Shown here: positions 15,577 to 40,700 of the stretch, in pieces
Layout: each line of letters starts with the position of its first letter
Numbering within the stretch: the stretch's first letter is position 1
Source: Pocillopora damicornis
Lineage: Eukaryota
Assembly (NCBI RefSeq): GCF_003704095.1
Contig: NW_020844672.1
Coordinates: forward strand, 310,001-374,000
DNA length: 64,000 nt
Direction: 5' to 3'
Notes under the pieces: generated by a model
The model's input: only the letters and a program-made list of their open reading frames with translations
What the model was told of the DNA's origin: nothing
Databases searched by the model: none
Made by a program: the position numbers and the translations under genes

Positions 15577-18005
15577 GATCAAACTATTGAAAGAAACAAG
15601 TGCCAGCCCGTGACACGTGACCGTCACGAGGTGAATTAAGCTGCCCACACGAGGAAATCAACAAAACAGATACAACTAGAGACAATTCCAGAGCTGGGCG
15701 CTGCCTTTGAATTCAATCATGAACTGAGTCGATTGTTTCAATGGCGACAGATCACATCAACGTTGGGAAAGTTACGAAATGTTGCGTTTGTTGTAACCTG
15801 TCTGGAAATTCAAATTTTACAAGAAGTTTCCGTTCGAATGGAACCACAATTCTATTCCCTTTTTGAATGGAATGTTGAAAATTGCAACAAATTGTCCTTC
15901 TTGTTCGATAGAAATTAAATAAATACAGATATTGCTAAAAGCTCCATTCATGTTTGAATTAGTGTATGGTTATTCTTCAGCCGGTTCTTTTAGTCTAGTT
16001 CAAAAAAAATGTGGCCAGCCTTGGCCAGTTTTACACTTTTGTCCCTGTCACGTGTCCTTCCCAATGGTATGGCAAATTACACGGTAATTAAGACAGGCTA
16101 AAAGGAAGATTGGCCGGAACCAGGTATGGGAAAATATCAAGAAACGTGACAGCCCATGTTGCATAATATTTCCTTAACAGGATTTTGCCATAACTGTAGT
16201 TTTCATTGGTTCCCCTCGCCATCAGCTGTACCTCTCACTTGTCAAAAAGATCATGTTTGCTAGGGCGGCAATATAAATTACGGCATTTGAAACAATTTCC
16301 ATAACTTCACTGTACCAAAGTGAAATAAGTATATTGTGCACGTCAAAGGTACGGCGTTCAACACGTGTCTTTAAGAAAGAAAATACGTTAAATAACACCA
16401 TGATTAAAAGCTTTAAATTCATCTCAGTTTTCAATACCTTTATTTTCGACAGATTAGAGTTAATTTAAAACTAGCGCTAGCCACCGCCTGTAAATATTCA
16501 ACTTTCTCTCGAAAAAAAAAGAAACCACTTGAGAAAAGTTAGTTAAAAACTCTGCCCAAGGTCAGCCAGGATTAGAAAATGAGTCATTTCCTTCGCGAGT
16601 TACTGTTATGAATGGAAGGTGTTCAAATTCAAATTGAAATCTTTCCGCGCTAAAACGCAAGCTTCACGCAAAACGTAAATCCATGTTGTAAGAATAAATG
16701 AACACATACGTCAGATGTATTTTTGAACCAAATAAACTAATTTACACACAAATTAAGAGGACATGACCTTCGCAGCCGTGAAATCACAATCGCTGAGATA
16801 CAGCACACTTGTGTTCAAAATTGCCTAAAAATGGATGAGGATCAAATTACTTTTACGATATTACAAAAGCAGCAATTTGTAAATGGCTGAAAAAGACAAT
16901 GACCAAAAACAAAAACAAAAAAACCAGAATAAAATTGCGCACTGTTGTGCAAAGAAATCAAGTAACAAGAAGCCTATGGCAGAATTATGACTTACGATGA
17001 AAACGAAACTTCCCAGGACAACCAATGAAAATGAAGAAAGAGCAACTGCAAGACGTTGCCGGTCTTGGTGTTACAAAACATTTTAAGACTTCACATAAAA
17101 GGGAATTTACGCGAGCCAGGAAATACAAGCTAAGTGTAAAGTCGATGCTAGTATTTCAACAAACGAAAAAAACACCCCCATTATAAACAACTCCTGAGAT
17201 GGAACGAAGAGAAGATGAATACCTCACGAAAACTTTTCATTTGACTTGACAGGAAACAAGCCCACAGCAGTATGAGATTCAGTCTCTTTCATAAAATACG
17301 CCAAATTAATTACTTTCAAAGTGAGGGAAGCCACAAAATATATAGTTTGGAGATGGAAAAACACCAAAACAAAAGTAGTTTTACTAAAAAGTAAAACCAG
17401 TGGTGAGAGATAGAGAAGATTGAATCTGATTGCAGCCTGACCGCCACCTTGGGAAAGTTTTTGAAGCTCCTTCAAATGAAACGCAAGTTAAGCGACCAGA
17501 AGGTGTAAAGTTAAAATTTTTTTTTACACCTTTATACTGCTCCGTCCACTCAAACGTACTCAGCGTTATGAAAAATTACAACAACTAACTTTAACCTACA
17601 AGGAAGCCACAAGAAAATCAAAGATTCTCGATACTTGAGTTCTACCTAATAATATTCCGCAAAAATTATTAAATTCACTTCCAAGAATGAGTCTCAAACT
17701 CACCCTTAGCATGATGGATTGATACTAAGTTAGTCCCTTTATAATACTAACAAGAAAGCAGTATCTGCATATCATTATAGGGGTAGCTACCTAATTATCA
17801 ACACTGGCTACAACTTTGAATTAAAGAATACAAGCTGAAGAACATTACACAAGTTCTGTCTTGACACTATTGGCACAAGCTCACCAGGGAGATTACCTGG
17901 ATAATTTTTTAAGTCACTTCTGTTTCCATACAGATTTATTCGCAGATAGAGTGAACCTTCATCACAGAAGTTAATTAAAGAATGAGAATGACAATATTTG
18001 AAGTT

Positions 18006-21000
18006 TTACTCTTCATCGTCTTCTTCCTCCTCGTCCTCCTCTTCTTCGTCTTCGTCTTCTTCCTCAATAGCATCATCTTCTTCTCCATTCACATCACCAT
18101 TCTCTACCCTGTCCAGTCGAACTAAAAACAGAAAACAAAGAATTCACTTCAGTAATTTAAACTAATGCCATTATGTGTAAGGTCATGTACAACAGAAACA
18201 TTACACTGAAACCTGTATCAAGGGGACCCTATATTAAGCGGACATGAAACCCTAATCCAAAACAATTCCTTCCACATTTACTGACACTAAAGTCAACCCC
18301 TTTATTCCCTGAAACCTGTATAAAGTGGTTCCTTAACTCTTAAACTCCCAGAAATTATTAACATGTAACTTCTCCCTAAAATATTCATACACTATCCTGC
18401 AAACAGGTAACAAGAATATTCAAACTAATCAGGAAGAAGTTGATATCTTGATCCAACACCAGATTTTTGTAACTAAGGGGAGAATTGAAAATCTTGGAAG
18501 TAAAGAGTTAATGAGAAATTTTAGCTTCATTTCTATCCCACTGCAGTTTTAACATTACAATTTTCACACAAGAAAAAGGTTTTTCCCTTGGTATTAATTA
18601 AGACTAATTCTATCTGGCCAAAAAGACCAGACTTAAATTGTCACTGATTGCAAACTATTTTCTGTTTGGGAGTTTCGGTAACTGCTTCCCAGGTGATTTA
18701 TCAAGCAAACACTAATGATACAACCTGGGTGCAAATCTAGGAGCCAACTGACTTTCTTCCCCCTGTTCACCCAATATATATTAATAACTTACTTGAATCA
18801 TTGTTTCGAACCATTAACTCTGCTGCTCTGATTCTTGGTCCTTGTGTGTCAAAACTCATACCAAAAACAAGCAGTGTTCTGTTCTTTTCCAAAGAGGTGA
18901 CAATTTTTTGTTCAACTTGACTACCAATAATGGCAGACTATAAGGAAAAGCATAAACAACTGGCTCAACAGTATGAAGCAGTAGAGTAACCAAACTTAAC
19001 ACAAGCTGTAGACATAAAAAGATTGCTCAGCATGCTTCACCACATTTTCAGTATCCCAGAACCAATAGAAAATATGTTAAATAGTACAGATTGAGGATGA
19101 AACTTAATCATTGTAAGACCACAGACTTATGTGATCATCAAGGAATGCATAGTTATCGTCATGATCATAATAAACTGCAACATTTATTTACTGAATGGGT
19201 GTAAACAAGCACCTTTGATAAAAAAATATATATTCACCTGATTGGATAGCCTCAGTGCTGTCAAGTTAGTATTAGTTTCTAGAACTTTCATGATTGCCTG
19301 AAAATAGAGAAATATTAATGCTATTTAGTACTTAGAGATCAGCATATTGCTTCTCATCACCAAAAATCATGTGTTACTTAAAGCTGACTGTCAACATAAA
19401 AGGAGAGAAGAAAATCAATTTATCACATGCCAGGCTTACATTGCCAGTTTCAAGAAAGATAAAATGAAATATTGGAAGTTGAAAAAAATTAGGTGTTTAT
19501 TTTTTGTTTATTAGATATTATATCCTTCACAATAACTTGTTTCCAAAAACATTTGGTCTACATTTATAACTTCTCAGATATAATTGTTGAGTACCATATT
19601 TGCATGCAAGTGATTAATATTTTAGTCAAATAGCTTCTGTGTGTTTTCCATCAACCTTTGTCATCTTGAACAAGGGCTTCTGAAAGATTTTAACAAAACA
19701 TTCCACAAGTTACTGCAAAAATGAACTGCAGAAATAATGTCTGCTACACACCATGATTCCATCTCCAGTCAGGAAGTTAGACTCCAGGTTGATGCTCTCT
19801 AAGGTCTTGTTTTTACTTAATGCCTCTGCAAACATCTGAGAGAATCAAACAGCAAATTTATTTTCAAACAAAATGTAGATGTCTGTCAAACAATGTTATC
19901 AACCAGGGGAGGGGAAGATGGTCCTGTCTTTCATGGTTACCGACTTTTGTTGCAACATGGTAAGTAGTGCTATCAAAATGATTTTCCCTGAAGATCATAA
20001 TTATTACTTGAATAACAAGCAAAATTGTCAAAAAATTGGAAACAAATGAGACAAAAACTGTTTTTTGAATGCGCTTCAATTCAGAGTTTATCCTAGACAA
20101 AGAATACCTTGGCAGTCTTGTCTGTCATCTGTGTGTTGGCTAACTGAAGATGTTTAAGATTGGTATTACTTTTCAGTGCCTTGGCAACATCTTCAAGAAT
20201 CTCTGTAGTGACATCTCTATGATTGTTCAAGTTTAGATTTGTCAATTTTGCATCATTTCTTTTGAATTGTTCCATTGCTTTCCCAAGGTCCAACTCATTT
20301 ACAGCTGTGAGGTCAGGCTTTTTTATCTTAGTTGCCTTTACAACACCTGGGATTAGAAAAGGAATACTGTTAATCTTTCATTGTACTTTAGCAGCTGAAA
20401 ACTAAAACTGAATTCACCAAAGGCAGTCCTCTGCTGGATTCAAATGAATGAGCTAGGCAATGTAAGTATAATACTGCTCTAACAACTACAGGCTGTAAGT
20501 CTACTGCCTGTGATCAAGACAGGTCTTAAAACCAAATCCACTAACAAATGTTTTATAGTTTTTGTCAGCAGTTTTGAAGAAGTTATAAATATGAAATCTG
20601 CCTTAGTTGCTCATGGAAGTTTAAGTGTTAAGCCCTCTCATAAAAACAAAGTTTTGTAAGTTTCCCAAAGACAAAAGCACAGGTTGTATATAGCACCCAT
20701 GCTTTTCAAGAGCACAACCCTGAGAACATATAGGAGTACAGTGGTGTTTAACTCACCAGGTTTGTATTTCTTTAAGCCACTGCCTCTTAAAGCTTTCCCA
20801 GCTTCCATCTTTTCTGCAAAGTGACTCTGAGTTTGGGTTAACATGCCATGCACACCAAGTATTGCTGGAAGAACAATATCAAAAACAATCAAGTTCAAGA
20901 GGGAAGGATTCCAACAAACAGCACTATTTCATTTCATTACACTCTGCCTTCAGGTAGCAGATCTTGGATATTTTTGGTCAACTTTTTTTTTTGATATAAG

Positions 21001-23513
21001 TATTAGCCCTAACTCCCAGATCAAATTTGTAATTCTCCTTTCTGTCAACCATACAATTCTTATCATGTTAGTTCAGAGAATTTAGTATTGAATCAACTAA
21101 TTATCCCCAAATTGATAGTTTCCTTAATTCTCATCACTTATCTGGTTGATAATGTATTGATATTATAAGGAGAAATTCTGTCTTGGTCACTCATGGGAGT
21201 TAAAGGGTTAAGTAAGCTTGATACAAGTTTCCTTTTAACAAAAACTAAAACACATAACTCCCATAAAAATGTCTGTATTGAATATGCAGCAGCCTATGTA
21301 TGCTATAGACTGTGTATAATGCAGATAGTCAACTATCCAAATATACAAATGATTTGTTACAATGGAGTCTTGATACTGTGATCACTAGAAATCTCAAACT
21401 TGAGACACCATTTCATCACCACAAGGAGAATGCAACTAGAGAGCACATTTTGGAACCTTCTGGTCAATCCCTTAGAATTTCACGATAACAATATTCCACT
21501 GATTATAGTACTAAAAAGTAACACTTGAACCTTTGCACAGAGATCAATGGTCGTTTCATTTACCTGCAAGTTCCATCATTTCCTCATCAGTTGCATTATC
21601 TAAAACCTCACTGAGATCATCAGGGAGCAGTGGAGTTGGATCTTTTTTCCCTGGCTGCTCCTTTGGCCGCCAAACTTTGCCACGCGTTTCTTTCTTGTAT
21701 GGAACATAATCTGAACGTTCCTTCAGATTCTTAGCCTGTTCTTCCAGGTGTTCCAACAGATGTTGTCGATCAAATGGTCCAGTGTTATCCTTTTCTGTCT
21801 GGTTTTCTTGCCGCTCATGAACTGGGAGAAGGGCATTCTTTTAAAGAGATAAAATGTGGAGGAAATATTAAAAATTTGTTGTTAAGAAAGGAAAAACAAA
21901 TGTCTGAGTTTCTAATGAGAATTGGAACCTTGGTCAATACCAGTTTACAGTCAGTTGCTTCACTTTCAGATTCCAAAAGAACTTGTGTGAAAGCTGGGGG
22001 ATACAATCACTTTATAAATTTCAAACAAGGATAAATCTTAAAAGGTCACTAGAATGAATAAAATAATAATCACAAATTTTAAAGATTATTAGATAACTGA
22101 TCATTTTCACAACTGCTTTAGCTGTGTACATAACTGCAAAGGTATTTCATATTTTTTAAGTAAATTTAGTTCTCAGGATGCAACATCAAGTTGATAAAAG
22201 CAGTCTTTCAGGAAGTGCAAGAATGCAGAGTGCATGGCAAGAGTGTTTAAATTACCAAAAAAGCAATTTTTTTTGACCAGTTAAATTGTAGCATCTGTTG
22301 AAGCCATTAAAAATAGGTCTGTATTTCTCCATAACACAAAACACAATTTCAAGTGGACCTACAAGGCACTTGAACAATCTATTAAATCTGTTCTACTATC
22401 AGTTTAGTGCACAATTAAATGCAACATCTTTGCAAAGTCTTTGCAATACTCACAGAGAGAAGATCTCCTCACCATAAGAATTAGCATGCATGCAAGCTGA
22501 CAGATAACAAAACCAGCTTTTCAAAGTTTCATGCTAAGCTCATGCTATAAAATACTTAGGACATATCATGTCAATGTAACCCCTTCCTGAGATAATAAAA
22601 AACTTGTTTAAACATTCGATGTATTAAAATCCGCGCGGAAAATCCCAGCATTTCCTCTCTAACTTTATCGAGACTAGTCTAAGGAAACCAGTATCCATGA
22701 AGAGATCTGGCTGCTATCAAACTGCATCGTTACTATATTTACTTTCTGACCAATCACACTCATTATATGAATAGCATCGACAAGTAATTGTCGAGGAATA
22801 TCAACCCAAAAACACTCACTTCAAGGGGAATTACATTTAGCTTTTTTCCATGAATGACGATGAAAAAAAAGCGACTTTTAAAAGTACCATAGTGGCCAAT
22901 ATCCGAATCAAAAGTTAACATAAACACACGCTCAAAGTCTAATTATAGGTACGTCTTCGTGAATGTGTAAAAGACTGGACTTCATAAAACTGATCATAAC
23001 ATTCACTTTGTAGGTTAAATAATACAAACGAAGGTTAACTTTCAGGTGATCCAAAATATAGCCCTTATAAATCAGTGCTGTGTTCGAGTATAGGGTGCGT
23101 GAATCTAGTCACCATGAATGCAAATTACTACAACATACACTCAGCATGAATGTATGTGAGATCAAAAAAGAATCATCCCTGTTTAGGACAAAAACATCCG
23201 TACGAACCTAGGTAAAACGCTAAAACAGCGATGTGTCGCTCGGTGAGTTGCAAAAGCAAACAAAGCATATCGAACACATAACATGCTTCGATGCTAGCAG
23301 GAGTGAGCGACTCACGACTTGGCATGATTGCATGATTACTTGGATCACTGGAGGGACATCATGTCTTTCTTTAATATAAATTCTTACCTCGGGATCAATA
23401 GCTGCATTGAGGTCTGCTAACTCCTCTGGAGACAGAGCTTCCACTAAAGAATCCTCATCGATGTTTTGGAACTGATCGAGATCCACAGACTCTTTTTGCT
23501 TCACCCAAGACAT
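18006..23513 (-). CDS. TMOD: Tropomodulin, 383 aa; exons 23388-23513, 21564-21837, 20757-20864, 20108-20346, 19752-19835, 19238-19297, 18793-18937, 18006-18121
   Basis: DEDSLVEALSPEEL, DPENALLPVHERQ, TGPFDRQHLLEHLE, ATDEEMMELAAILG, LRR domain (LNLNN, INLESNFLTGDG, LRLSNQ), RNND; all introns GT-AG with consistent phase. Confidence 0.96.
18333..18511. mobile_element. TTAA-type MITE, related family
   Basis: TTAACTCTT...AAGAGTTAA termini; similar size and subterminal sequence to families A and B. Confidence 0.6.
21003..21211 (+). mobile_element. TTAA-type MITE, family B
   Basis: AACTCCCAGATCAAATTTG...GTCACTCATGGGAGTTAAAGGGTTAA; inverted copy at 40215-40420. Confidence 0.8.
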
Positions 23514-24818
23514 GGCGTCCAACTTAGTGCCCAAGTTAGCAAGATTTCGTCAAAGTACTCGATGAATATGACTTTTTCTGCCAAGGATGTCCTTATTTTG
23601 GACAGATACAAACTAAAAGCGGGAAAATAACCGGTTATTTCCCTCCTTGGACGAGAAAATCGAGGAAAATTTCATTCACAACACTCCCTTATTCGTCTGA
23701 CAAAATACTCAAGCTCGACCCAGACCCTCCGCGCTCATAAATATTCCTTACAAAGTGTGATGGGCGGTGTTGAGTGAAATGATGAGTTTTGCTGGATTGT
23801 TCTGATAAACAGTCATCCAAGATTGGGCTCCGTTTCAAATTTATAACAAAGTTAAATTGGAACAGCATGGTTTCCATTGCATAATATATCGATTGATTAC
23901 GAAGTTTAGCGTTAACGAAACCGAGCTAATAAAGTTATTGAACTTTTACTGAGGTATTTTTTTTTGCCAAATATTGTTGTACCTGTTTAGCTGGAGTTAA
24001 ATAAAATCTTCTCATCATTTTCGAAGTTTATGGACATTTGTTGCACATCACTCTTCTCGAATCAATTATTTAGCGGATTTCGAATGTTATCTCCATCACC
24101 ATAGAGCTAATATGAAAAATAAACACTTCAGACTGGATGATTGCCTCTGTCACTACGATTTCTTTCACGTAACGGTCACAGATTGAAAGAATCGTCTGCG
24201 TCATTCAAACAACGACTCCAAGGAAACAGACCAATTCTGACGCCTATAGAACTGTGACGCTTAAATTTTACAGAAGAATGGATCAGGGATCATTCTCTGT
24301 CTCTAAGCAATCTTGTAAGAGCGAAACCCTCGTTGGCTGGAAGCTGAAAGTATCAGTTTCCATATCACAGACATCGCACCCACAAACTAGCATTCCCATC
24401 TTTGATGCTTTTAAGTTACATAAAAAAAGTCGCGTGTTCAATTCCCTCCGACCAGCACAAAAGGAAACTCGTGTCCAAAATGTTAGATATCATTACCAAC
24501 TCTCGGCGATGTTTTGCCGATGTACATCACTTAATATGCTTAAACTGAGAGTGAACGTTTTTGGCAGATAAAATTATTCACAGACGAAATATTTTTTCCC
24601 AAGAAATTTCCTTATGTTTCCCTGTCTCTTACTAGTGTCCTTGTTGAAAAACTACAAAGCTGGGCACTTCTGAATCAAAATCTATGGAATTTCTCAACAG
24701 AAAAGGTTAATTCATTCTTGAATAAACCACGAAACAGTTTTGTTTATAAATCGTAGGTTGTCTGAGGTCAAATCAATTAAAGTGATCAGTACTCGTGGAA
24801 AACACTTTGCATTCGCTG

Positions 24819-25030
24819 TTAACCCTTTACACCCTAACATTAGTAGTCATATTCTCTATACTGTTTTCTGTACATTTGCTAATGTGCTGACAAGGAGAAT
24901 TTGTCTAACAATCAAGAGTTTCTTCAGTTGGTGATCATTTCCTTTGTTTTCATGACATTAATGCGTGATTCAGTGATGAGATTGTAAGGAGAAATTAGAT
25001 GCTAGTCACTCTTGGGGCTTAAAGGGTTAA
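24819..25030 (+). mobile_element. TTAA-flanked piggyBac-like MITE, family A
   Basis: TTAACCCTTTA...TAAAGGGTTAA; internal sequence shared with 27356-27568 and 35371-35572. Confidence 0.85.
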
Positions 25031-27147
25031 AGTACAGCTAGGAAAAAGGTGCTGTCATGATTCAAGGGAACACTACAGCCAACAGTTTAAACGCGCGACT
25101 TCTCTTAGTCCCAGCCCTCCCCTCCCTTCCACTCCTCTGGTGAAACTTGAGAAACCGATAGGTGGACAAAACAGGAGGGGTGTAACGACAGAGGACCAGG
25201 GAACAGTAGGACGGGTAAGGGCTGAGAGACAAGCTGCAGGGAAGAAACAACGCTCTCGGCCTTGTAAGAAATTTTGCGGAAGGATGTCAAGAATACCTAC
25301 CAAAACTCTTAACCTTGCACAAACAAGAGGGTCTCAATGGGGTCATAGCTTTAATGGCTAACACTTAAACTTTGGGCTACTTTGCGGTTACGGTTAACCC
25401 AAAATAACACATTGAAGAAAAGAAAAAATTTTACGGTTCATTTTTCTTTACGGCTAATGGTTAACACCACTGAGACACTCAAACAAACTTATATGTTTTA
25501 AGCGATTGTAGTGAGACGTAACAAACCAACGCAAATAATTAAACTCGGAACGTAAAAGTGTACGAAGTTTATTGATACAGCGTGGTGGTCTGATTAACAA
25601 CCGGACTTTTAGATTAAAAACTACCAGTGAAGTTTCCGTGATTGCCTTCATATAAATGTTTACGCATTAGTTCAAATTCTAACAAAACCTGGTTCATAAT
25701 ATAATCCCCGTCAAGAATAAAAATTGACATCACAGACTATAGGTCTGGTTGACAACCTGATAAGTTTCGTTGTTCTTAACTCTTAGTCTTTAAGACCTAA
25801 CTACGTGTTCTCGTGCAAGTTTCTGAGATTACATAGTAAGAAAGATACAATTGACCAATGCTGGAAATTCGGTACTGCGATAAAAACTAATTATTGTCCT
25901 AAAATTACACGATTTCGTTACACTACAACACAATCACTCTCTAATGTACGATTCCATTAAAATATTTCATTGTTCAATTAAAGTTATCCCGCGCGAGATC
26001 ATCTCACCAAGTTAAAACTTAAAAAAAAATCATTTCAAGCTACAATTCTATTTAATACATTTATTCCGACGATCGTATCACTGCATAGATTTGCAAATTC
26101 ACCTAAAAAATTTACTAGAAATTGTCGTCTTTGCACGATTGGCTCCTTCAAAAAGTTACCCTTTAAGGATGTTTTCTGTTAAAGAGGATAAGATCTAAAA
26201 GCAAAAGGTCTAAAAGCTAGGAAATCAGTGAAAAGCAGTTGACAGATAAATGATTGGCAGACAACCCCGATGCATTTGGTGGGTGTTGTGTAGTATCTCA
26301 CTAAGCGTGCTTAGCCAAAAATTGCTCATCTTTCTAGAAAAATATCTTATGCGCGACACTTGTACGGTGTCAGATTCGTCCAATTTGGCACAAGTAGATA
26401 GACTTTTTTGACTTTACATCGTCTTTAAATGAGATACTGAACTTTTTGTCCTCCAATCTGCGAGACAAAATAAAAGAAAACACATCATAAGTAGATTTTA
26501 AAATAAAATGCCGTACAAAAATGAATTATAAATAAACAAGGGATGAATAACCCTAACCCTCGCTGAAAATAAGCTTTAAATAAAAAAGAAACGATAATCA
26601 GCGATAATCAAAGAGGAGAGTAACATTTTTAACAAACAAGAGATTCTTCATGATGAATGCCACTTTCATCAACCGAACTTCTTCTGTTGAAGGAATCATT
26701 TGCGAGCATTTTACGCTTCACTTGGTTTTCCCGGCAACTTGAACCGCATTTAAAGGAAAAGATTATCTATTTTCCTCAATTTTAAGTCTTCGCCATAAAA
26801 TTTTCTCACAGAACTTATCAGGGGGAATCTCTTCGAAGAGGGTTTTCTTCGAATCCTGTAAATTCCCCTTACAGCATCCCTAACAACTCAACTTCAGTAA
26901 CATAATTTAACCCTTTCAAATGTTTTTTTCACGTTAAGTCCTCCTGTCTACAGGGTGCCATGTCGATTTTTGGACAGACAGACTTGTCTAAAGAAAATTC
27001 CCAGAGAACGGTAATATAAGACAACACTAGTGTCGATGAACACAAAACAGTAGCGTTGAGTTGAGGTGGCGCTCCACGACACTCGTTAAACCCTCGAGAT
27101 GTGTATCTGACTAAAAGAAATTTGAGGAGAGATCACTAACTTTTTTT

Positions 27148-28745
27148 CTAACGGAGTACCTTGCGAGGCCTGGTAGAGACACTGACAGCGGCAGTTTCGC
27201 CTTCGTGACCCTCTTGGAACACATCCACCACACACACATTGCTACTTGGGCTGAAGTTTCGGTCACGGATCAAGAACTCTACACACGGAGCATGACGATA
27301 AGCCTCCCAGGAATCATGGAATTCTATGTACTGTTGCACAAAACAAATTCAACTGTTAACCCTTTAACCCCTAAGAGTGACTTGCATCTAATTTCTCCCT
27401 ACAATATCAACTCAGAATGATACCTTAAGGTCATGAGAATATAGCAAATGATCACCAACTAAATAAAGTTCTTGATTGTAAAACAAATTCTCCCTGCCAG
27501 CACATCAGGAAATGTATAGAGAACAGTATGGAGAATATGCATACTGATGTTAGGATGTAAAGGGTTAAAGGAGAAAACATATGGACTTGAATCCAATTTG
27601 GAGTGGCTGAGATCCACGCCAGGTGTAGATCGAACACGATAATTTAATTTAATCTTATCAACTGAGTTTGAGCCTGATCTTTCGAGCGTTAGCCCTTCGC
27701 CAATCACTCTGATGACGGGCTTACGTTCGAAACGTCAGCCTTTAAACTCTCTACGGTAGCCAATTTACGTGAACAACTCAGTTGATAACACGAAATTACC
27801 CTGTTATACTCTCCCAACGACGCAGCACCACAGTTTTTTTTTAAAGAAACTTACCCCTTTATTCATAGGGCAGATCTATCCACTTGTGATGCGCTAGCAA
27901 CCTGCCTGTGGCCTTAACACAGGTGTAATTTTACTCCTGGCGTAAATGCAATTCTCTACAAGCTTTTTTCAAATTTGTTCAAACTTGTTGACTTCAAAGA
28001 ACGACGAAAGAATGAGCAACTGCAAGAGCCTAAAACGTGAAACCACTTATCTTCTCAGGATAGCTGATCTAAAATGTTCCCGATTGTCCAATATATATCT
28101 AAGTTCTTACCTTCTTGCAGCTTGATCGAGCCACCCAGTTGTTGTTGAGGTCTCTCAGCTGTACTCTGACATCACTAGCGTCTCCGTGCACTAGAACAGG
28201 TTTGAACGGAGAAAATGGAAATCGGCCAAGCTCTGCCTCAGAGTTGCATACATCCTAAAAAAATCAATATAACAATTTACTTGACTACTTTGTATCTTAC
28301 CCCATTGAAGAAAAATCAGGTTTCGCATTGCAAATGTGGCTACTACTAAGAAGAAAATGAGGCTCAACTTGAGTATTATTGTTTGTCTCTCGATATGGTC
28401 ACTTCTGTGGAGGAGGCGTAATCTCTACTACCAAGAACCCGTCTTTACGCAACCTGCTCTCGCGACTGATTGAGCATTTTCCTCATTTCAAAATTTCTCT
28501 CCCAATTGCAATTTTAGATAGCCTCATTTTCTGAACCACAAATTACAGTGCCTCCCTTTAAAAACGGGAAAAAAAACTTCTCAAACCTTAAACGCTGCTT
28601 CCGTGTCATCTAGCAATACCACATTCAAAGCCCAGTCATCATTCACCCTTGGGGGAGGGGCGAACACTGCCGCCAACATGCGCTTGGTAGCCTTGCCTCG
28701 CGTGTGAGGGCGAGATCTGCCCACCAGGCTAAATGCTGAGAAATG
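27148..28745 (-). CDS. UPA domain of ZO-1 following ZU5 (last three exons)
   Basis: HFSAFSLVG...[10 protein letters not shown]...[24 protein letters not shown]...VRVQLRD...YIEFHDSW...CVEFLI...CVVDVFQ aligns by eye with the UNC5-type UPA domain. Confidence 0.8.
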
Positions 28746-31700
28746 ATCCACAAGGACTGAAACCGAGTTGGAATCTACTTGGCACTGGTCTCCTCGGGAA
28801 TCCCGACCTTGAAGAGAAACGTTCTTCCATTCAGATGGCTGACCTGCGGGACAGCGGTAACAAAACACTATATGAATTTTCATCCAATGAACTCTACGGA
28901 TCACTAGTGTCCTCCTACAGAAAATGTCTCTTTTTTGATGTCTTACAAAGGCCACAAAAGGCACTGTGAGTCAAATTCCAACAACGCGTAGCCACAAGGA
29001 GTATTGATCGATTCTCTCGGTTGAACTGGATACTACACTTTTGTAAACTATTGCAAACAATCAAGCCCTAATTAGGTAACTTTAACAGCCTCAAATCAAC
29101 AGCGAAACGCGCTCTAGGACGATTACCTTCACATCCACACACTCACACAAATACACGTACCTGTGGGCGTGTCACTGGACTTGAGGGCAAATGACCATCC
29201 ATCAGGGGTCATGGAGGCACAGTGCGGCAGACGGAGCTCCACAGGTTTGAGGAACTGAGTGCCATGAGGGCCACACATCACTAATGGACTCAGAAGAGTT
29301 TCTCCTAACACCATACAAACACAACACGTCACATATTCACCTACCATGTGTCGTTACACAATAATACAGCCAACCACCAGACAAAAACTACTTAAGATAG
29401 TTACGATTGTCGTGTGTGCAATAAACGCTGAATTTCAGTAGGTCAGTAGCGATGTTGAGGTTTTTCTAACCGGAAAAATGCTGTCATTTTCTGGTCAAGT
29501 ATTTCAGGTTGTAAGTAATTCTGTACGGAGCAAAAGAATCACTATGAAACGTAGCCTTTAAAAACTTTGATGTCCTTACCTCGATCAGAATCTAATGGAG
29601 GCATAAAGTTGTTGTCTTTACAGACTTTGAAGTAGATTTCCTGTTCCACACCCGGTGGGATAGCACCTTCAGGTATGACAATGCTAACCCCGGACTCCGG
29701 GGAAGATAGGACACCCCCCTGAGAAGTGAACTTGCCCCTAGCAGTAGCAACGACTTGTGTGTCTTCATCCAGGGATTCAAAATCACTGAAAGAAACAATA
29801 CGAAGAAAAAATTTCTTTTGATGGATTAATTGGACTGATTTCAATTTCTTCTGAGCATCTCTCAGTAAGGTCGCGACCACGACATTCAGGATCCTCGGGA
29901 CAAAACGAATAGACTTTGCTCCAGCAACAAAGCTAAACGAGTCCGTGCGCCAAATTGGCCGCCAAGCGACAAAAACGTCCCTTTGAAGATCGAGTGACTG
30001 GATGAAAGTAATCTTTAGTTTTCCCATTACGCGAAAGTCACACGCGAAAAAATAATTTAAGAAAAGCTTGTTCAACATATGTACTAAAAGACCAAATATA
30101 TCTTCACTTTTATAGAAAACCGTGTCTTGTTTGTTGTAAGAATAACGGCCAGGCTACCACTAAGATGACGCATGGATAAATCAAAGCTCTGAACGAAAAT
30201 AAAGAAAAACTATTTGTAAATCTGATACATAAAGCTACTTATAGATGCGACCGATGCAAGGAGTTATATTAACACAAAGTTAATATTTTTTGACAGTCTG
30301 ATAAGCAACAAACGTGACAATTGACGTAACATGAGGGAAACTTTATTAAAATTTGCGTTGCCTTGATCTAACTCTACGCTCTACGAAGCGACTTGATTTT
30401 TCACGACTCATCTCCAAATCAACACTTTGTTGAAGCTTGGAAAGTGGCCTTGTCAAAGGCGCAATCGTGAACCTATTTTCCCTAATTCTGTTCTCGAAAA
30501 ACACTTCCCTTAGCTTAAGATTTCTAGCCTCGGACATTTACTCCTCACCTTGTCACAACGTTCTGTCCTTCGTGATCCATGTTGTCAAGGTCTGACGTGA
30601 CCTTGTGCCTGTACTCTGTTCTGTACGTCGTCGGTCTCGGGTCTGGCTCGCGCTCTGGTCGGGAAAAACGAGGAGATCCCGAGAGGCGAAAATTGTACGT
30701 CACAGGGTCTCCTATGCGAGGCCCATCCGAGGGTCTGCTTGTGGGTGGGTCACGAGAAAAAGGCCGATCACCCGAAGAAGGCCTGTCATTGTTCCCGGCA
30801 TTGAAAGGTTTAGGAGCGTAAGCTGAATACGCCGATCGGGGGCGTTCGGGTCTCCCCGCGTCAAACTTGGGCGCCGTTCGGGTCGGAATCGTCACTTCGG
30901 CTCTGTAACGAGGTTCTCGAGATAGACTTCCCGTTCTGTTCTCAGAATTCATAGGGAACTCAGTCTGCGGTGCACTTTCCACTCGATAATTCGAGACGTT
31001 CGCGCGGATTTCAGACTCCGCAGGTTTATCGCGATCAAAACGCGTAACGGTGGGGTAAGAACGCGTTGGATAATAGCTAGAATGTGCTGTCTCCTTCTTA
31101 TCTGGATTTGAATAATCCACCACAAGGTTACGAGGTTTTCTGTCGTACGACTCCGAGAATGGACGAGGTTTGCGTTCCTCGACAGAGCGCCGTCGCTGAG
31201 GTATTAAGGCTGACTCTAAATCTTCCAAACGCTTTTCAAGATCTGCCTCCACTTCTTTCTTTTTCTCCTGTACTTCGATCGGTGGTTCTCGGATGCGATC
31301 GATTTGCTCTCGACGCTGACTCGACTCGTTATCAATTGCCCAGAGCTTAGACACCGGGACTCCTACGCGTGCGTCGTACTCTTTGAGAAGGTCGGAATCA
31401 CCTTCGACTTTACGAAGACTTTCACGCTTCATTCGCAATTCTTCGGCGTCCGCTTCGGACCGATCGAAGCCATCGGGCATTCGGGTCTTCTTGAGTGACT
31501 GTCTTAGCTCAACTGGGTTCTCACGAGAAGGAAGTAACCTTGAAAGAATAATAACACAACAGTTACTCATTTTTACTTGTCACTGTTCAACATTGTGCGA
31601 CAAACAGACAAGTCAGTTCAATCAGTGAAGCAACGTGAAAATTTTGATGACCGTTTAAAAATTATTTCAGAGCTCTTCGAGCTCAGGAATGTGAAGAGCC

Positions 31701-34700: not shown

Positions 34701-37700
34701 AATCGGCCCAAGTAACACCACTGGCCTGACAAAACCAGCTATAAAGAAAATAATTTAAGTTAAAAAGCTTGCCAAAGCAAAGGGAAGACACATTTTTAAC
34801 ACAAGTAAAACTAAAAGTATCAATTAAGTAAATATAGCAGCGTTTTGCAGAAGGGAATGCACTTGATATTTCACGAAGTTTAACTTACGTTTTCTGAGAG
34901 CAACACGTTCATATGCTGGCAGTTTGTTTTCCAGTGCAGTGGTCGCTGAAAAATAACAACTCAGTGTTACTGATTTTCCCTCATATGAATAGCACATCTT
35001 GCGCAAAAAAAGAAGGCAAATAAGCTCATAGGACCCTGCTCATGTATTACTTACTGAATGATTCCTCATCCAGATGATCAGAAGACACAAACTTGTATTT
35101 CTTTAGTGTGCCACCTCTAGAGTTGCTCCTCTTCAAGCTGCCATAATTATCACCCTTCCTCGGAGTCATTTGTTCGACTTTTTGTTGAACTTGAGCCAGC
35201 TGCTCAGCTCTGTAAGAAACAACAAGGCAATGTCAACTCATAAAATGCTAGTTTTAAACAGGGCGTAACAAAATGGGATTTGCTTCAATTTCTCTCTAAA
35301 AGGAAAATCATATGGCTATACAAAGGAAAACGTCCCAAGGAAAACCACTGAAAGCAAATTTTCGCAATTTATACCCTTGCATCAGTATGCATATTCTCCA
35401 TACTGTTCTCTATACATTTCCTGATGTGTTGACAGTTAGAACTTGTTGAACTATCAAGAACTCCTTCACTTGGTCATCATTTCCCATATTCTCATGTCCC
35501 TAATGTGTGTTTCAGGGACGATATTGTGAGGAGAAACTAGATACTGGTCAATCTCAGGAGTCCAGGGGTTAAAGGTTATTTTTGAAGATTTTGTTATTGT
35601 AGCCAGTCAATGTCATTCATTCTCCTGAATTTCTTAAAACTCATTTTCAGAGTGCCTTGCAGTGAATTAATACACAAAGGTGAATTTCTGTACTGACGAA
35701 TGCTGTTTGAGTAAAGCAAGAAGTAATTTGTCTTTTCGCTAAAGTGACACTATGAAATGAAATGATCATGTCTTGATTAAAACCCTCATGACAAGATGAA
35801 CATCATCTTTCTGTTATCTAAACTTTTCTCATGGTAACATTTAATTACCTGGATTTATTGGGAAGAATTCCAATCTCAGTTTCCAGACCAGTCTTTGTTA
35901 CAACCTGTGCACGCCATGCTCCAATCACCCCATCATGCATGGTATCCCATATGTGGAACACATCCTCCCTTTGGAAAGAGAACTCCTGTTCCTTCATCTG
36001 CTCATAGTCAAAGTGAACTCTGTCAAAAGATAATGAGAAAAAGAAAATGAGTTAACTTGTAAACTTGGCAGAACTTTCTATTACTGCAACTTTAAATCTC
36101 CTTTTTCTTAATAATACCCCAGTAAATAACAACGATAATTTTTTTTTTTATAGAAGGTAAAACACACAGCAGTATAAAAACTGATAAAACAGAGGCTCTC
36201 TTGTTATTTTTTAAATGGGAAAAAAGGAAAAAACACAAATGTTAAGTGCAATATCTTACACAAAATACTAAATAAACACGCATGTATGCCTTAGTTTTAT
36301 TCCTAGTTAGTTGTACTACAAGGTTTTCTATTCAAAACCAACACATCATAGCACGTTTATAAAATTAAGACAAACTAAGCTCTACAAGAAAATTTAGCAA
36401 CGGTTTCTTTTTCAACTGTTCACCTATTGAGCAACATTCAAGGACAAAGTCTCACATATACAATGCACAATATCTGCTGTCACAAGTTTGTAAGGTAACG
36501 ATGAATCCACTTCACCCAACAAACTTACTTGATGTAAAATGAATCTCCAGATTCTTTGCTGATCTTGTCAAAAGCTTAAAACACAGAGTCAACAGTCAAT
36601 TTCATAGGGTACAACAAGAAATGGACTCTCTTTAAATTAGTAATTAAATTGAAAAAGATTCTCTGAAGATACCAGAGGAACTTCTCTTACTTTGTCTTCT
36701 ATACTTGCACAGAAGGTTCACTTCATCTCCAAGAGACAACAAAATCAAAACAGCCTCTTCTCTTGTGATGTCCTTGAAATCTATGTCATTGGCCTGAAAT
36801 AAAAGATGGCATTCCTTGGTGTTTAGAAAATTTCTCACCCCTCTTCCAGTTAAAACTGTTGGTTCTAAAAGGTATAACTTATCAAATTGAGCTAAAAGAC
36901 CCTCAAAATCTCAAACTGATCATCAAAGTCAAGAGTGAAATATCATGTTCACTGGTTTAAAAGTGTACTCACCATTAATACTTGATCACCCTTCCTTAAT
37001 CCTTCATTGTAAGCTGGGCTTCCTTCCTTCACAGCAGCAACAAAAATACCAGTTTTATTTCCACCTGATACTTGGATACCAAGACTGCCACTCTTACGGA
37101 ATGCCACAAGTCGCGCATCCCTGTTGAAAAAAGTTGAGTTGCTTTATGTCATAGCCAAAATATTAAAATTGCACACAGCAGCACAAGGCACATTTTAATT
37201 ATCATAATCTTCTCATAACAAAATTACTCTGAATTCATTTTGGAGATTCCTGTACTAGTTCACTTTCCAAGAGTAACTGTAGACTGTCTTAAAGAATTCT
37301 GACAGCATATGTACCAGTATTTGAATTGTTAAGTAGAAGTTTCTATTCAAAACTTAGGCAATCTGCTTGTGTATTTATCATTTTTCCTTACTAGCAGGGA
37401 CTCTCAAATAACAGAAGCATACCCTCTATATCTCCTGCGGTCTACAGAGTCCTGTGCTCCATCCTTACGATCACTGCGAGGCGAACTTGAGGTAGACTCA
37501 ACATAATTGACACTTGATCTTGACGCATTCACAGATTCATTCCTTCCCCAAGAACTTAAACCATCTGGTGTGTATGACACTGGGGGAGGTGAAGACAAAA
37601 TACTAGTTACAAGCGATCAATAAACAGTTTCTATGTTTCAATACATAGTAGTGCAACAATTTTGGAAAACATTAATATAGTTAGGGTTCACAACCACTTT

Positions 37701-40700
37701 TGAATGAGACATGCATTGCTGAAAACAAGACAGCATTGGTTTCAAGTTTTTTGTTCGATATGCTTCGAGGAAAACCAGTGAAGTTTAGTGACTGCTGGCA
37801 CTTGAAGATAAAAGTGAAAGCAATCTGAAGTTAACAAATGTTTCTTAGGCTTAATGAAACTCTGATTCATGAATCACCACATATTGCACTTTTGCTGTTT
37901 CTTATGCCTTTCAGGAAGGTTATGGAATTTTAATCTAAATGCAAAAAAGCTCCCCAATGGTACTGTTTCTCATAGCAGTAAATCCTGCCTGGCCAAGATG
38001 TCTTTGCATGAAAAATAAGACATATAATCTGTATAATTATTTTTTCTATGACCTGTGGAGTTCATGAAATCAATTCAAAAATCTTAAACTTCAGATTGAG
38101 CTTTTAGAGAGGGTTTGTCTTGAAACTTCGATTAATACCTTCAGCAGGTTTTGGAAAATGTGGTTCTGATTCCTGTTGTGAACTCTCTACAGCCCTGAAG
38201 ACCTCCTCTTTGTCATAACCTATCCCCGAGACTCGTTCACCAGTATCTGGCCTCTTCCAGCTTGATCCTAGAAATCAATAGATGTACATCAAAAAGAAAC
38301 ATGAACAAAACAAGGGTGCCAAACTGTTTTGTTACAAGAGCACTAAGATAGAAAAACATTTATTTTCATTTATTTTAGCCCTCTTGTTGTTTACTTAAGT
38401 CACCAAATGGACCACAGTACACCTATTGACTCCCATGCATCTTAAAGATCAACATCATCTAAGTTACTAAACTCGCACTTTAAAAATTTGAACAGCAACA
38501 GCAAATTTATGTCAAGTAATTAGGATGTAAGCTACACAAAGTCATGGCTAATATTTTTGGCTGCTAATTATCATACCTCCATTAATCAACAAACTTAACC
38601 TTTTTATTGGAGATCTACAATACTTACCTGAAAACAGCAGGTTGTCTTTATCCAAAGGAGGTGGGGGTCGCTCTGGGAGATCATCCTCACTATAGTGCCT
38701 ATTGTTGGAGTAATAGTAAAATAACAGTCATAAGGTAGACATCCTGTATTGAAACACTTCCAAAATACTATTTGAGGGTTGGTGCCATACGAGTGTAAAC
38801 AGGAGGGCAACAACCTCTGCAATGACAAGGAAGTCATCACAGTAATCAATACACAGCCCAGCTCCAGGTACCAGCCAACAGAATACTGACATAGATAAGC
38901 TGGTTGTGAGCAAAATGCAATAAAAATTAAAACAAACACAGTCAATTTTCTGCAACAAAGTCCAGAGTATTGTCCACAACTTCATGATTAAGGTAGAAGT
39001 GTCTAAACACACCAAGCAGTTTGCAAAATATACCTTGAACATAGCCTCGCGTGTTCTCTCTTACCTTGGAGGCAATTCTGGCTCTTCATTATAGCCATTT
39101 GGCAGGTCATGATCTCTGTCTCGAGTTTTGTGTCTAAATGCTGCTGGCAAAGAGTGTGTGCTGTAACTTGGTGGTAACTGGTCATCCTTCAGTACCAACA
39201 GGTCCAGTTTGTTGGAACGACGGACCATATCAATGGCCTCCCGCAAACTCATCTCTTCAGATTTACGGTCATTTATCTGTAATGCAAAGGCAAAATTACC
39301 ACAGGCAAGGAAAAATTCTATCTCAGTCTATGCTTGTGTTTCCTGTTTTTGAAGAAGTTTTTGTGATTCTATACTGGGCCTCACCATCTCGAATAAATAT
39401 TTCTATATGTAATTATTTGGCACCTATTGCTTTCCTTTACCTACTGTTCTTTTATACAGTAATTAAGATTTCATATGGTTATTACTAGATATTAATTATT
39501 TTTGTGTTTTTTATTAGTAGGATTTTGCACAGAGGTAAAAAGCATGATTAAACATTAAATAATGTTTCATTGCGCACCTTCAGGATGATGTCTCCAGACT
39601 TAAGTTCACCTTGCCTAGCAACCATACCATTCTTGTCAATTTCTTTGATGAACATGGATCCCCCAAGTGAAAATCCATAACCTAAGAATACAAGAATTGG
39701 CCAAATTTAGTACAAAACACAAGCATCTGCACTTATCAAAATGAGCACAAATGATCATTTTATGAACTTGATGCCTCGTAACGTGATTACTTAATACTAA
39801 TCACATCAACTATTTCAATTCTCTCTGCCATTTTCTTGGATAGGATACCCTTCTTTATATGTAGAGCAAGTGTTCATATTGCTTTGGAATGATCACACAG
39901 TGAACCCTTTCTTAAAAATTGCAGGCCAAATTGCTATCCTTTAATACTCCTGTAAATTAGCCTTTCTTGCCTTGACAACATGTACAAGGACAAAAGAGTT
40001 TCACATAAGAGGGATGCCAAGAAGGCTTGTTTGCATATAAAAGAATAAAATTCATACCTGCAATTATCAAAGAGGTCTATTGGCTATATAGAAACTAACA
40101 TGGTTTACACAAAATTTCTTTTAAAAAAAATTGAAAAAAAAAAAACAATCAAAGTATCTCTGCTAGATTAGAGTTTGAGGGGATACAAAATACATTTTTT
40201 TTTTTTAGTAACACTTAACTCTTCAACTCCCATGAGTGACCAAGACAGAATTTCTCCTTACAATATCGATACAATATCACCAGATAAGTGATAAGAATAA
40301 AGAGAAATATCAATTTGGGGTAAGTTGATCCGAAACTTAATTCCCTTAACTAACATTATAAGAAATGACTGGTAAACAGTGAGGAGAATTGCAAATTTGA
40401 TCTGGGAGTTAAAGGGTTAATTTTGATGTAGTGTAAAGGGTGTGTCATTACACCTCATCTAATTCCATTGCAGATTTAAGATTATTAGTTTGACATGTTA
40501 TAAATCAACAAGGTACCTTTATTTTGCTGTTCCCTTACGAGTGTGACAGTTTGTGGAACCTTACTTCCTTCTCTGGGAGTAGTCATCACAGGAGCAAGCT
40601 TTTGTCGTTTAATGGCCTAGAAATGAGAAGGTACTGTCATTCCAAATGTAAAGCAGAACTGCATTAACAAAGCTATTGAAGATCTACAAGAGTAAAGACT

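Follow-up and report, generated by a model that had tools for sequence, protein, structure and literature searches.

A C-terminal ZU5-UPA tandem in the ZO-1 gene of the stony coral Pocillopora damicornis

What do the last exons of a coral ZO-1 gene encode, and are they functionally tied to the CARD at the other end of the same protein? The question is raised by positions 27148 to 29785 of a 64,000-nucleotide stretch of Pocillopora damicornis DNA (assembly GCF_003704095.1, contig NW_020844672.1, positions 310,001 to 374,000), which we refer to as the window. The interval belongs to the 3' portion of a MAGUK gene of the ZO-1 type that runs on the minus strand from a CARD exon near 47000 to beyond 26425. 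An earlier note on this DNA saw a UPA-like tail here and proposed that the CARD stands in for a missing death domain. On balance, we favor as the best overall explanation that the product of these exons is the ZU5-UPA tandem at the C terminus of an anthozoan ZO-1, a homologue of the UNC5-type module that lacks the death domain. That the tail is a UPA domain, giving a full ZU5-UPA tandem, appears almost certain.

The open pieces of the window and tblastn with public ZO-1 proteins as queries show the domain order CARD, PDZ1-3, SH3, GUK, a 340-residue disordered exon and ZU5, and in tblastn the orthologues are colinear with the window exons from 46947 to 27151. Pfam finds in the orthologues the three PDZ domains, SH3, GUK, long disordered region and C-terminal ZU5 of ZO-1 (TJP1). 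The features on which the argument depends are listed below; P0020 is a public Logan protein derived from transcripts of this species.

29580 to 29785, minus strand: exon E1, which encodes the N-terminal half of ZU5 (positions 2-52 of the Pfam ZU5 profile; 51.5 bits, E 1.2e-13)
29161 to 29304, minus strand: exon E2, which encodes the second half of the 97-position Pfam profile for ZU5 (from 54 to 97; 62.6 bits, E 4.2e-17)
28587 to 28843, minus strand: exon E3, last ZU5 strands, basic linker and start of UPA (match to UNC5B 3g5b_A)
28737 to 28745, minus strand: His-Phe-Ser motif within E3 (His 28745-28743, Phe 28742-28740, Ser 28739-28737)
28111 to 28254, minus strand: exon E4, middle of UPA (RNA joints; 58% identity to Nematostella ZO-1)
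27141 to 27330, minus strand: exon E5, last part of UPA, spliced from either of two donors, 27160 and 27141 (RNA contigs)
27178 to 28691, minus strand: UPA domain, with coding parts in E3, E4 and E5 and introns between them (Pfam PF17217, mapped from P0020)
26425 to 26457, minus strand: exon E6, last 10 codons IGGQKVQYLI and the TAA stop at 26427-26425, outside the interval first noted (RNA contigs)
46684 to 46926, minus strand: CARD at the N terminus of the same gene (Pfam CARD over residues 27-107 of the open piece 47004-46618, E 6.5e-13)

The borders of E1 to E5 are all AG/GT, and their phases are compatible. RNA evidence was taken from Logan contigs of four runs from four studies, placed on 27000-29900, which show presence and not level. 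The four joints (27330 to 28111, 28254 to 28587, 28843 to 29161, and 29304 to 29580) are present in all four runs, placing these exons in the ZO-1 messenger RNA as the earlier note had assumed, and the skipped parts carry CT..AC ends, which are GT..AG on the minus strand. P0020 has 1369 residues and 85 member sequences; its longest contig measures 4461 nucleotides and is therefore taken to be complementary DNA (cDNA). Between PDZ2 and the tail it runs colinear with the window, at 96-100% identity over E1-E5. Together, the RNA joints and the cDNA-length contigs support the gene model and rule out a mis-annotation or a gene fusion artefact. The three phase-consistent exons described previously are thus correct as to phase; the interval holds five exons, and the part that follows ZU5 consists of the second half of E3, E4 and E5.

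The 3' end of the gene is spliced in two ways. Donor 27160 is used in all four runs and donor 27141 in two of them, and both lead to the same 30 letters, which match 26428-26457 exactly (one match against zero expected) behind an acceptor reading ...ctcgcag. The 27160 donor keeps the frame, so that the main isoform ends in exon 26457-26425 as ...PRK-IGGQKVQYLI, an E6-type end shared by the annotated proteins of Porites, Montipora and Oculina. The TAG at 27150-27148, previously read as the stop, is in use only with the 27141 donor or a retained intron; it then yields ...PRKVLR, without the ...YLI end, and P0020 does end in ...VLR. Counted from ...DHF, the ...VLR isoform continues for 159 residues and the ...YLI isoform for 166, in good agreement with the roughly 160 residues first estimated.

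Two further observations concern the tail itself. Its C terminus is conserved: stony corals end in ...QYLI or ...HYLI, and Nematostella in ...EYVI. We take this hydrophobic-x-hydrophobic end to be a candidate PDZ-binding motif, in a protein with three PDZ domains of its own. At 28209, the RNA contigs of two of the four runs carry C in place of G, a substitution that turns the Pro of FPFS(P/A)FKP into Ala; Ala is also found in P0020 and three other coral proteins, and Pro in the window and Oculina.

The assignment of the tail to UPA is based on searches and folds that used single window exons or public proteins. Pfam UPA (PF17217) matches the transcript-derived P0020 at residues 1227-1360 over profile positions 1-134 of 140, with E 2.9e-6 and a score of 27.5 bits that lies above the cutoff of 27. 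All five cnidarian ZO-1 proteins scanned match the same profile from position 1 to 118-136 of 140, and all five score 116-118 bits with Pfam ZU5 (cutoff 21); precomputed Pfam annotation already gives PF17217 for P0020 and the Porites protein. Searched alone against PDB sequences, E3 matches UNC5B 3g5b_A (E 2e-4, query 19-85 to chain 122-185) in an alignment that spans the last ZU5 strand, the linker and the start of UPA, that is, the ZU5/UPA border. A profile built from 14 C-terminal stretches (A1) aligns with UNC5B 3g5b in one stretch, profile 16-294 to chain 5-280, at E 2.1e-51; its matches to ankyrins are at E 1.9e-7 and weaker and cover ZU5 only. Free of the bias of A1 described below, BLASTP of P0020 against the UNC5-like protein P0009 gives 27% identity over 195 residues at E 1e-11. 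A search of all proteins with E3 returned 12 matches, mostly single-exon fragments that read into introns, and no full-length coral protein.

The predicted fold points in the same direction. An AlphaFold model of the P0020 stretch has a mean predicted local distance difference test score (pLDDT) of 71 and a predicted template modelling score of 0.52, with a confident ZU5 and a first UPA half at about 80. UNC5B 3g5b is the top Foldseek match (E 2.5e-15), followed by ZO-1 ZU5, ankyrin-B ZU5-ZU5-UPA-death domain, NLRP1 and CARD8. With VIA-align, the UPA part (residues 166-306) comes closest to the NLRP1 UPA 7crv_B (Z 10.6, root-mean-square deviation (rmsd) 3.4, 124 residues), and further NLRP1 UPA chains follow (7crw_B, Z 10.2; 6x6a_G, Z 8.9), with unrelated beta-sandwiches at 7.0 or less. 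The ZU5 part aligns with ankyrin ZU5 at Z 14.6 and rmsd 2.1 over 127 residues. Modeling of ZU5-UPA alone, which the earlier note had named as a check, therefore recovers the UPA fold at moderate model confidence, and the profile score, the UNC5B alignment and the NLRP1 fold match together bear out the UPA-like nature of the tail. An atlas feature comparison places the tail near UPA, UNC5B-like and FIIND clusters (scores 0.78-0.86), which we regard as a lead only.

Several of the results weigh against this assignment. Four of the five orthologues fall below the Pfam UPA cutoff, with scores of 24.6 bits in Porites, 23.2 in Oculina, 20.7 in Montipora and 16.3 in Nematostella. Taken singly, E3, E4 and E5 have no Pfam match at E up to 10; against PDB sequences, E5 has zero matches and E4 only two at chance level (E 1.2-1.3). 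Profile A1 includes two UNC5-like fragments, which inflate its score over profile positions ~120-215. The structural model is middling, with pLDDT 48-68 in the second half of UPA, and the two-domain superpositions on UNC5B (250 residues) and ankyrin-B (238 residues) come out at rmsd 11.9-16.7 Å. With these deviations of 12-17 Å and the predicted template modelling score of 0.52, the packing of ZU5 and UPA into one compact unit is no more than putative; of the complete supramodule first described, the presence of both domains in tandem stands.

The ZU5 part of the model (residues 1-163) also resembles the GAIN domains found in adhesion GPCRs (Z 9.8 for CD97, 8.7 for BAI3 and 8.4 for CELSR1). 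This match fits the kinship of GAIN, ZU5 and Nup98 credited to Liao et al. 2014 in a passage of PMC10084454.

No death domain follows. Cnidarian ZO-1 proteins end 10-30 residues past UPA, and Pfam finds neither a Death nor a CARD domain after UPA in them. Likewise, none of the ten longer open pieces downstream of E5, from 27132 to 23692, holds a hidden death-domain exon by Pfam, which agrees with what had been claimed from the letters. At the opposite end, the CARD piece in the first exon aligns with residues 2-98 of coral ZO-1 proteins. That CARD and tail belong to one protein, as proposed, is confirmed by a single transcript contig of 5509 nucleotides from a related coral (P0024), as well as by four annotated proteins of anthozoans.

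Among known systems, the coral module is closest to the ZU5-UPA-death domain of UNC5B (PDB 3g5b), its best match in both sequence and fold at 28-31% identity, with the same layout of ZU5, short linker and UPA. UNC5B differs in having a death domain after UPA, in reading QLG at the site of the coral His-Phe-Ser (HFS) and in being a transmembrane receptor, whereas coral ZO-1 is a cytoplasmic MAGUK scaffold. The ankyrin ZU5N-ZU5C-UPA-death domain (PDB 4d8o, 3f59) is close in its ZU5 fold, and its ZU5C-UPA aligns over 238 residues; it contains a pair of ZU5 domains as well as a death domain, and its sequence match (E 1.9e-7) is far weaker than that of UNC5B. The FIIND of NLRP1 and CARD8 combines ZU5-UPA and CARD in one protein and carries x-Phe-Ser at the end of ZU5. 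Its CARD directly follows UPA, whereas the coral CARD is far N-terminal, and its cleavage is proven (PMC3210808), whereas that of the coral protein is a prediction. This ZU5-UPA-CARD arrangement, left out by the earlier note, is the closest precedent for a CARD together with ZU5-UPA. PIDD1 and UNC5CL, by published descriptions (PMC3210808, PMC10084454), share with the coral protein a His-Phe-Ser at the end of ZU5 before UPA, and differ from it in having a death domain. Finally, the ZU5 of vertebrate ZO-1 (PDB 2kxr, 2kxs) is the orthologous domain in the same PDZ3-SH3-GUK...ZU5 protein, at 50-71% identity, with 2kxs aligned to model residues 5-160. It stops at ...DHF and a partner hairpin supplies two strands, whereas the coral protein adds one or more strands and the whole UPA.

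The distribution of the tail was surveyed with the Nematostella ZU5+UPA region as the query. The UPA region alone, in a word-indexed search, had returned five coral proteins only and missed Nematostella; ZU5 and UPA were therefore used jointly, so that carriers of both domains rank first. Among the best 120 of 1933 matches, six proteins score 444-730 bits at 97-100% coverage, namely five stony-coral clusters and Nematostella, and the remainder reach at most 335 bits and at most 51% coverage. C termini were then tallied in 162 ZO proteins of at least 900 residues, many of which are isoforms of one species. Exactly ...DHF is the end of 152 of these, from vertebrates, hemichordates, bivalves, a phoronid, a centipede and one isoform of Actinia tenebrosa. 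Vertebrate ZO-1 thus ends after a partial ZU5 and lacks UPA, as previously stated, and coral ZO-1 does not end at ...DHF as bilaterian ZO-1 does; nor was an alternative version of E3 that stops at DHF found in the window. Six proteins, all from stony corals or Nematostella, have a tail of at least 150 residues, three from amphioxus have a tail of 29 residues, and one is a garbled model without DHF. In all nine proteins that extend beyond DHF, Ser directly follows Phe.

This invariant Ser makes the end of ZU5 a candidate cleavage site. In the E3 alignment, the coral HFS is placed on the QLG of UNC5B 3g5b_A, and D'Osualdo et al. (PMC3210808) equate the essential Phe of the CARD8 cleavage motif, SF/S, with Leu-677 of UNC5b and describe HFS in PIDD and Nup98. 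The model places HFS in a turn between strands 144-150 and 153-160, that is, at the end of ZU5 and ahead of the strand by which the chain returns to the ZU5 sheet, as expected of a His/Ser-Phe-Ser cleavage motif. Since the motif is of the PIDD/Nup98 type, we infer that coral ZO-1 may cut itself between Phe and Ser, a possibility that, judged from the sequence, we consider plausible at somewhat less than even chances. Such a cut would leave a ZO-1 body ending in ...DHF and a UPA fragment of ~18 kDa, which would remain non-covalently held, as in NLRP1, CARD8 and PIDD1. Two points count against it: bilaterian proteins retain the His even though they are truncated, and its conservation is therefore no proof of a catalytic role; and UNC5B and ankyrin show that ZU5-UPA can work uncleaved. 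At an identity of ~10% between the coral protein and CARD8 or NLRP1, the auxiliary His and Glu residues that tune cleavage near the site are not reliably mappable.

It is also possible, at rather less than even chances, that the coral ZU5-UPA is a purely structural, non-cleaving module like those of UNC5B and ankyrins, which docks a cytoskeletal or membrane partner and in which HFS is a structural relic. UNC5B is the closest solved relative, and a passage of PMC10084454 describes ZU5 autoproteolysis as kept in Unc5CL and not seen in canonical Unc5. Conservation of DHF even in proteins where nothing follows it also points to a structural role for the motif. However, UNC5-type sequences here read QLG, LPG or QPG in place of HFS, Ser follows HF in nine of the nine ZO proteins that continue, and the bilaterian proteins stop exactly at the scissile-type bond.

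The role of the tandem, cleaved or not, can be considered in light of vertebrate ZO-1, whose conformation at tight junctions is controlled by the binding of its ZU5 to cingulin and MRCKbeta. The vertebrate ZO-1 ZU5 is described as an incomplete barrel, two strands short, that is completed by a 22-residue hairpin of GRINL1A (PMC6928914); the matching PDB entry is 2kxs. In the coral protein it is reasonably likely that one or more strands downstream of HFS close the ZU5 barrel in cis and that the UPA piece caps the ligand site. The post-HFS strands would then take the place of the hairpins that GRINL1A and MRCKbeta supply in trans to vertebrate ZO-1.

These considerations bear on the origin of the tail. 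We think it likely that ZU5-UPA is the ancestral C terminus of ZO-1 and was lost in Bilateria past the scissile-type bond. In this scenario, an ancestral ZO-1 carried ZU5-UPA, the bilaterian line dropped everything beyond the Phe of HFS, and truncation at that residue would have freed the ZU5 groove for partners in trans. A complete anthozoan ZU5 and a bilaterian stop at the HFS Phe would provide a concrete evolutionary origin for the incomplete vertebrate ZU5, and they raise the idea of an ancestral ZO-1 that was capped in cis and may have cut itself. Identity between Nematostella and the window is 56% in E3, 58% in E4 and 47% in E5, compared with 31% in the disordered exon, which indicates that the tail is under constraint. 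Two observations speak against ancestry. In a survey that covered hexacorallian and bilaterian ZO proteins, the tail is found in hexacorallian sequences only, and "ancestral" therefore rests on parsimony. Furthermore, isoform X3 of the sea anemone Actinia tenebrosa (P0132) has the CARD and ends exactly in ...VLVDHF.

The converse, that UPA is a hexacorallian gain by exon shuffling from a coral ZU5-UPA gene, we regard as unlikely. It would account for a tail present in only six of the 162 long ZO proteins, all from stony corals or Nematostella. Against it, ZU5 is common to all ZO-1 proteins and is incomplete in bilaterians, and it is improbable that a domain should arise in incomplete form. The amphioxus tail, a 29-residue remnant, begins SWFALIG and resembles the coral strand SAFSLVG. 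The exon borders of the window are the same in Nematostella. Moreover, E3 is single-copy in the genome, with no close paralogue and a next best exon only 29-35% identical, which rules out a recent capture from a paralogue.

The amphioxus tail merits description in its own right. Its sequence, SWFALIGWPRFHRYDHTGSMGGVITTNI, occurs in P0010, P0013 and P0014 and is conserved in three Branchiostoma species; it keeps the Ser and has no UPA. It may represent an intermediate state.

If ancestry and cleavage are combined, anthozoan ZO-1 would be a self-cleaving scaffold with the UPA fragment as a removable cap, and bilaterians would be hard-wired by truncation in the cleaved, uncapped state. We offer this combination tentatively, as a rather doubtful one. 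Were it true, autoproteolysis between Phe and Ser of HFS would yield the same ...DHF end that bilaterian genes encode by a stop codon, the cap over the ZU5 groove could be released, for example by tension or turnover, and the truncation would have given rise to the ZU5 of vertebrate tight junctions, which is mechanosensitive and binds in trans.

A different use of the tandem was suggested by the earlier note: the CARD would fold back onto ZU5-UPA in place of the death domain and give a closed, autoinhibited ZO-1, as in UNC5B. We find this very unlikely. The two parts do lie on one polypeptide, CARD and death domain have the death fold in common, ZU5-UPA-death domain modules of the UNC5 type can take a closed form (PMC10084454), and vertebrate ZO-1 is reported to fold via its ZU5 end (PMC9010756, PMC6748370). 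However, the vertebrate fold-back is described in PMC6748370 as a mechanosensitive intramolecular ZU5 interaction, and the passage that describes it does not name the CARD as a partner. In coral ZO-1 the two ends are separated by ~1300 residues, much of them disordered. The ZU5-UPA module of NLRP1 and CARD8 is described as acting by self-cleavage and UPA-driven oligomerisation and not by fold-back (PMC3210808, PMC11874512). The CARD is present without UPA in ZO-1 of oysters, Pecten, amphioxus (Branchiostoma) and Scyliorhinus canicula and in the Actinia isoform; the CARD of these proteins thus has a UPA-independent role, and fold-back looks unnecessary.

That UPA is an oligomerisation aid, in which UPA-UPA contacts between ZO-1 molecules lower the threshold of CARD polymerisation for junctional assembly, is also improbable: UPA promotes CARD filaments in NLRP1 and CARD8 (PMC11874512, PMC7794386) and the modeled UPA is most like that of NLRP1, but UPA adjoins the CARD in NLRP1/CARD8 and lies at the opposite protein end in coral ZO-1, a cleaved UPA fragment would be without a CARD, and identity to the NLRP1 UPA is only 7-9%.

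With a ZU5-UPA tandem in anthozoan ZO-1, a MAGUK scaffold joins the short list of ZU5-UPA carriers, and ZO-1 becomes the second architecture, after NLRP1/CARD8, to pair ZU5-UPA with a CARD. Since such proteins can already be found in public gene sets, and one of them has a UPA tag from Pfam, the novelty lies in the reading and not in the sequence. Our search of full-text literature, which did not extend to supplements, found no paper on UPA in ZO-1 and nothing linking ZO-1 ZU5 to cnidaria or MAGUK ZU5 to Nematostella; a cnidarian polarity review makes no mention of ZO-1. Among the papers listed that speak of ZO-1, ZU5 and a UPA domain together, all concern NLRP1, CARD8, PIDD1, ankyrin or Robo4, and ZO-1 occurs in them just once or twice.

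Three other elements of the window lie within or beside this gene. The intron between E5 and E4 holds a repeat element at 27350-27870, where the summed RNA-contig depth rises to ~90,000 at 27485-27581 with many odd joints; it is probably a repeat of the short interspersed element (SINE) or miniature inverted-repeat transposable element (MITE) kind. Look-alikes with a ...NPLxP...ISPYNI-like translation lie at 24740-24934 (plus strand), 21141-21293, 35469-35606 and 40359-40454. The upstream neighbor, at ~51700-63806 on the minus strand, encodes an immunoglobulin/fibronectin-III receptor with a proline-rich tail that by eye is DCC/neogenin-like, and the downstream neighbor, at ~18000-23549 on the minus strand, is a tropomodulin-like leucine-rich-repeat gene.

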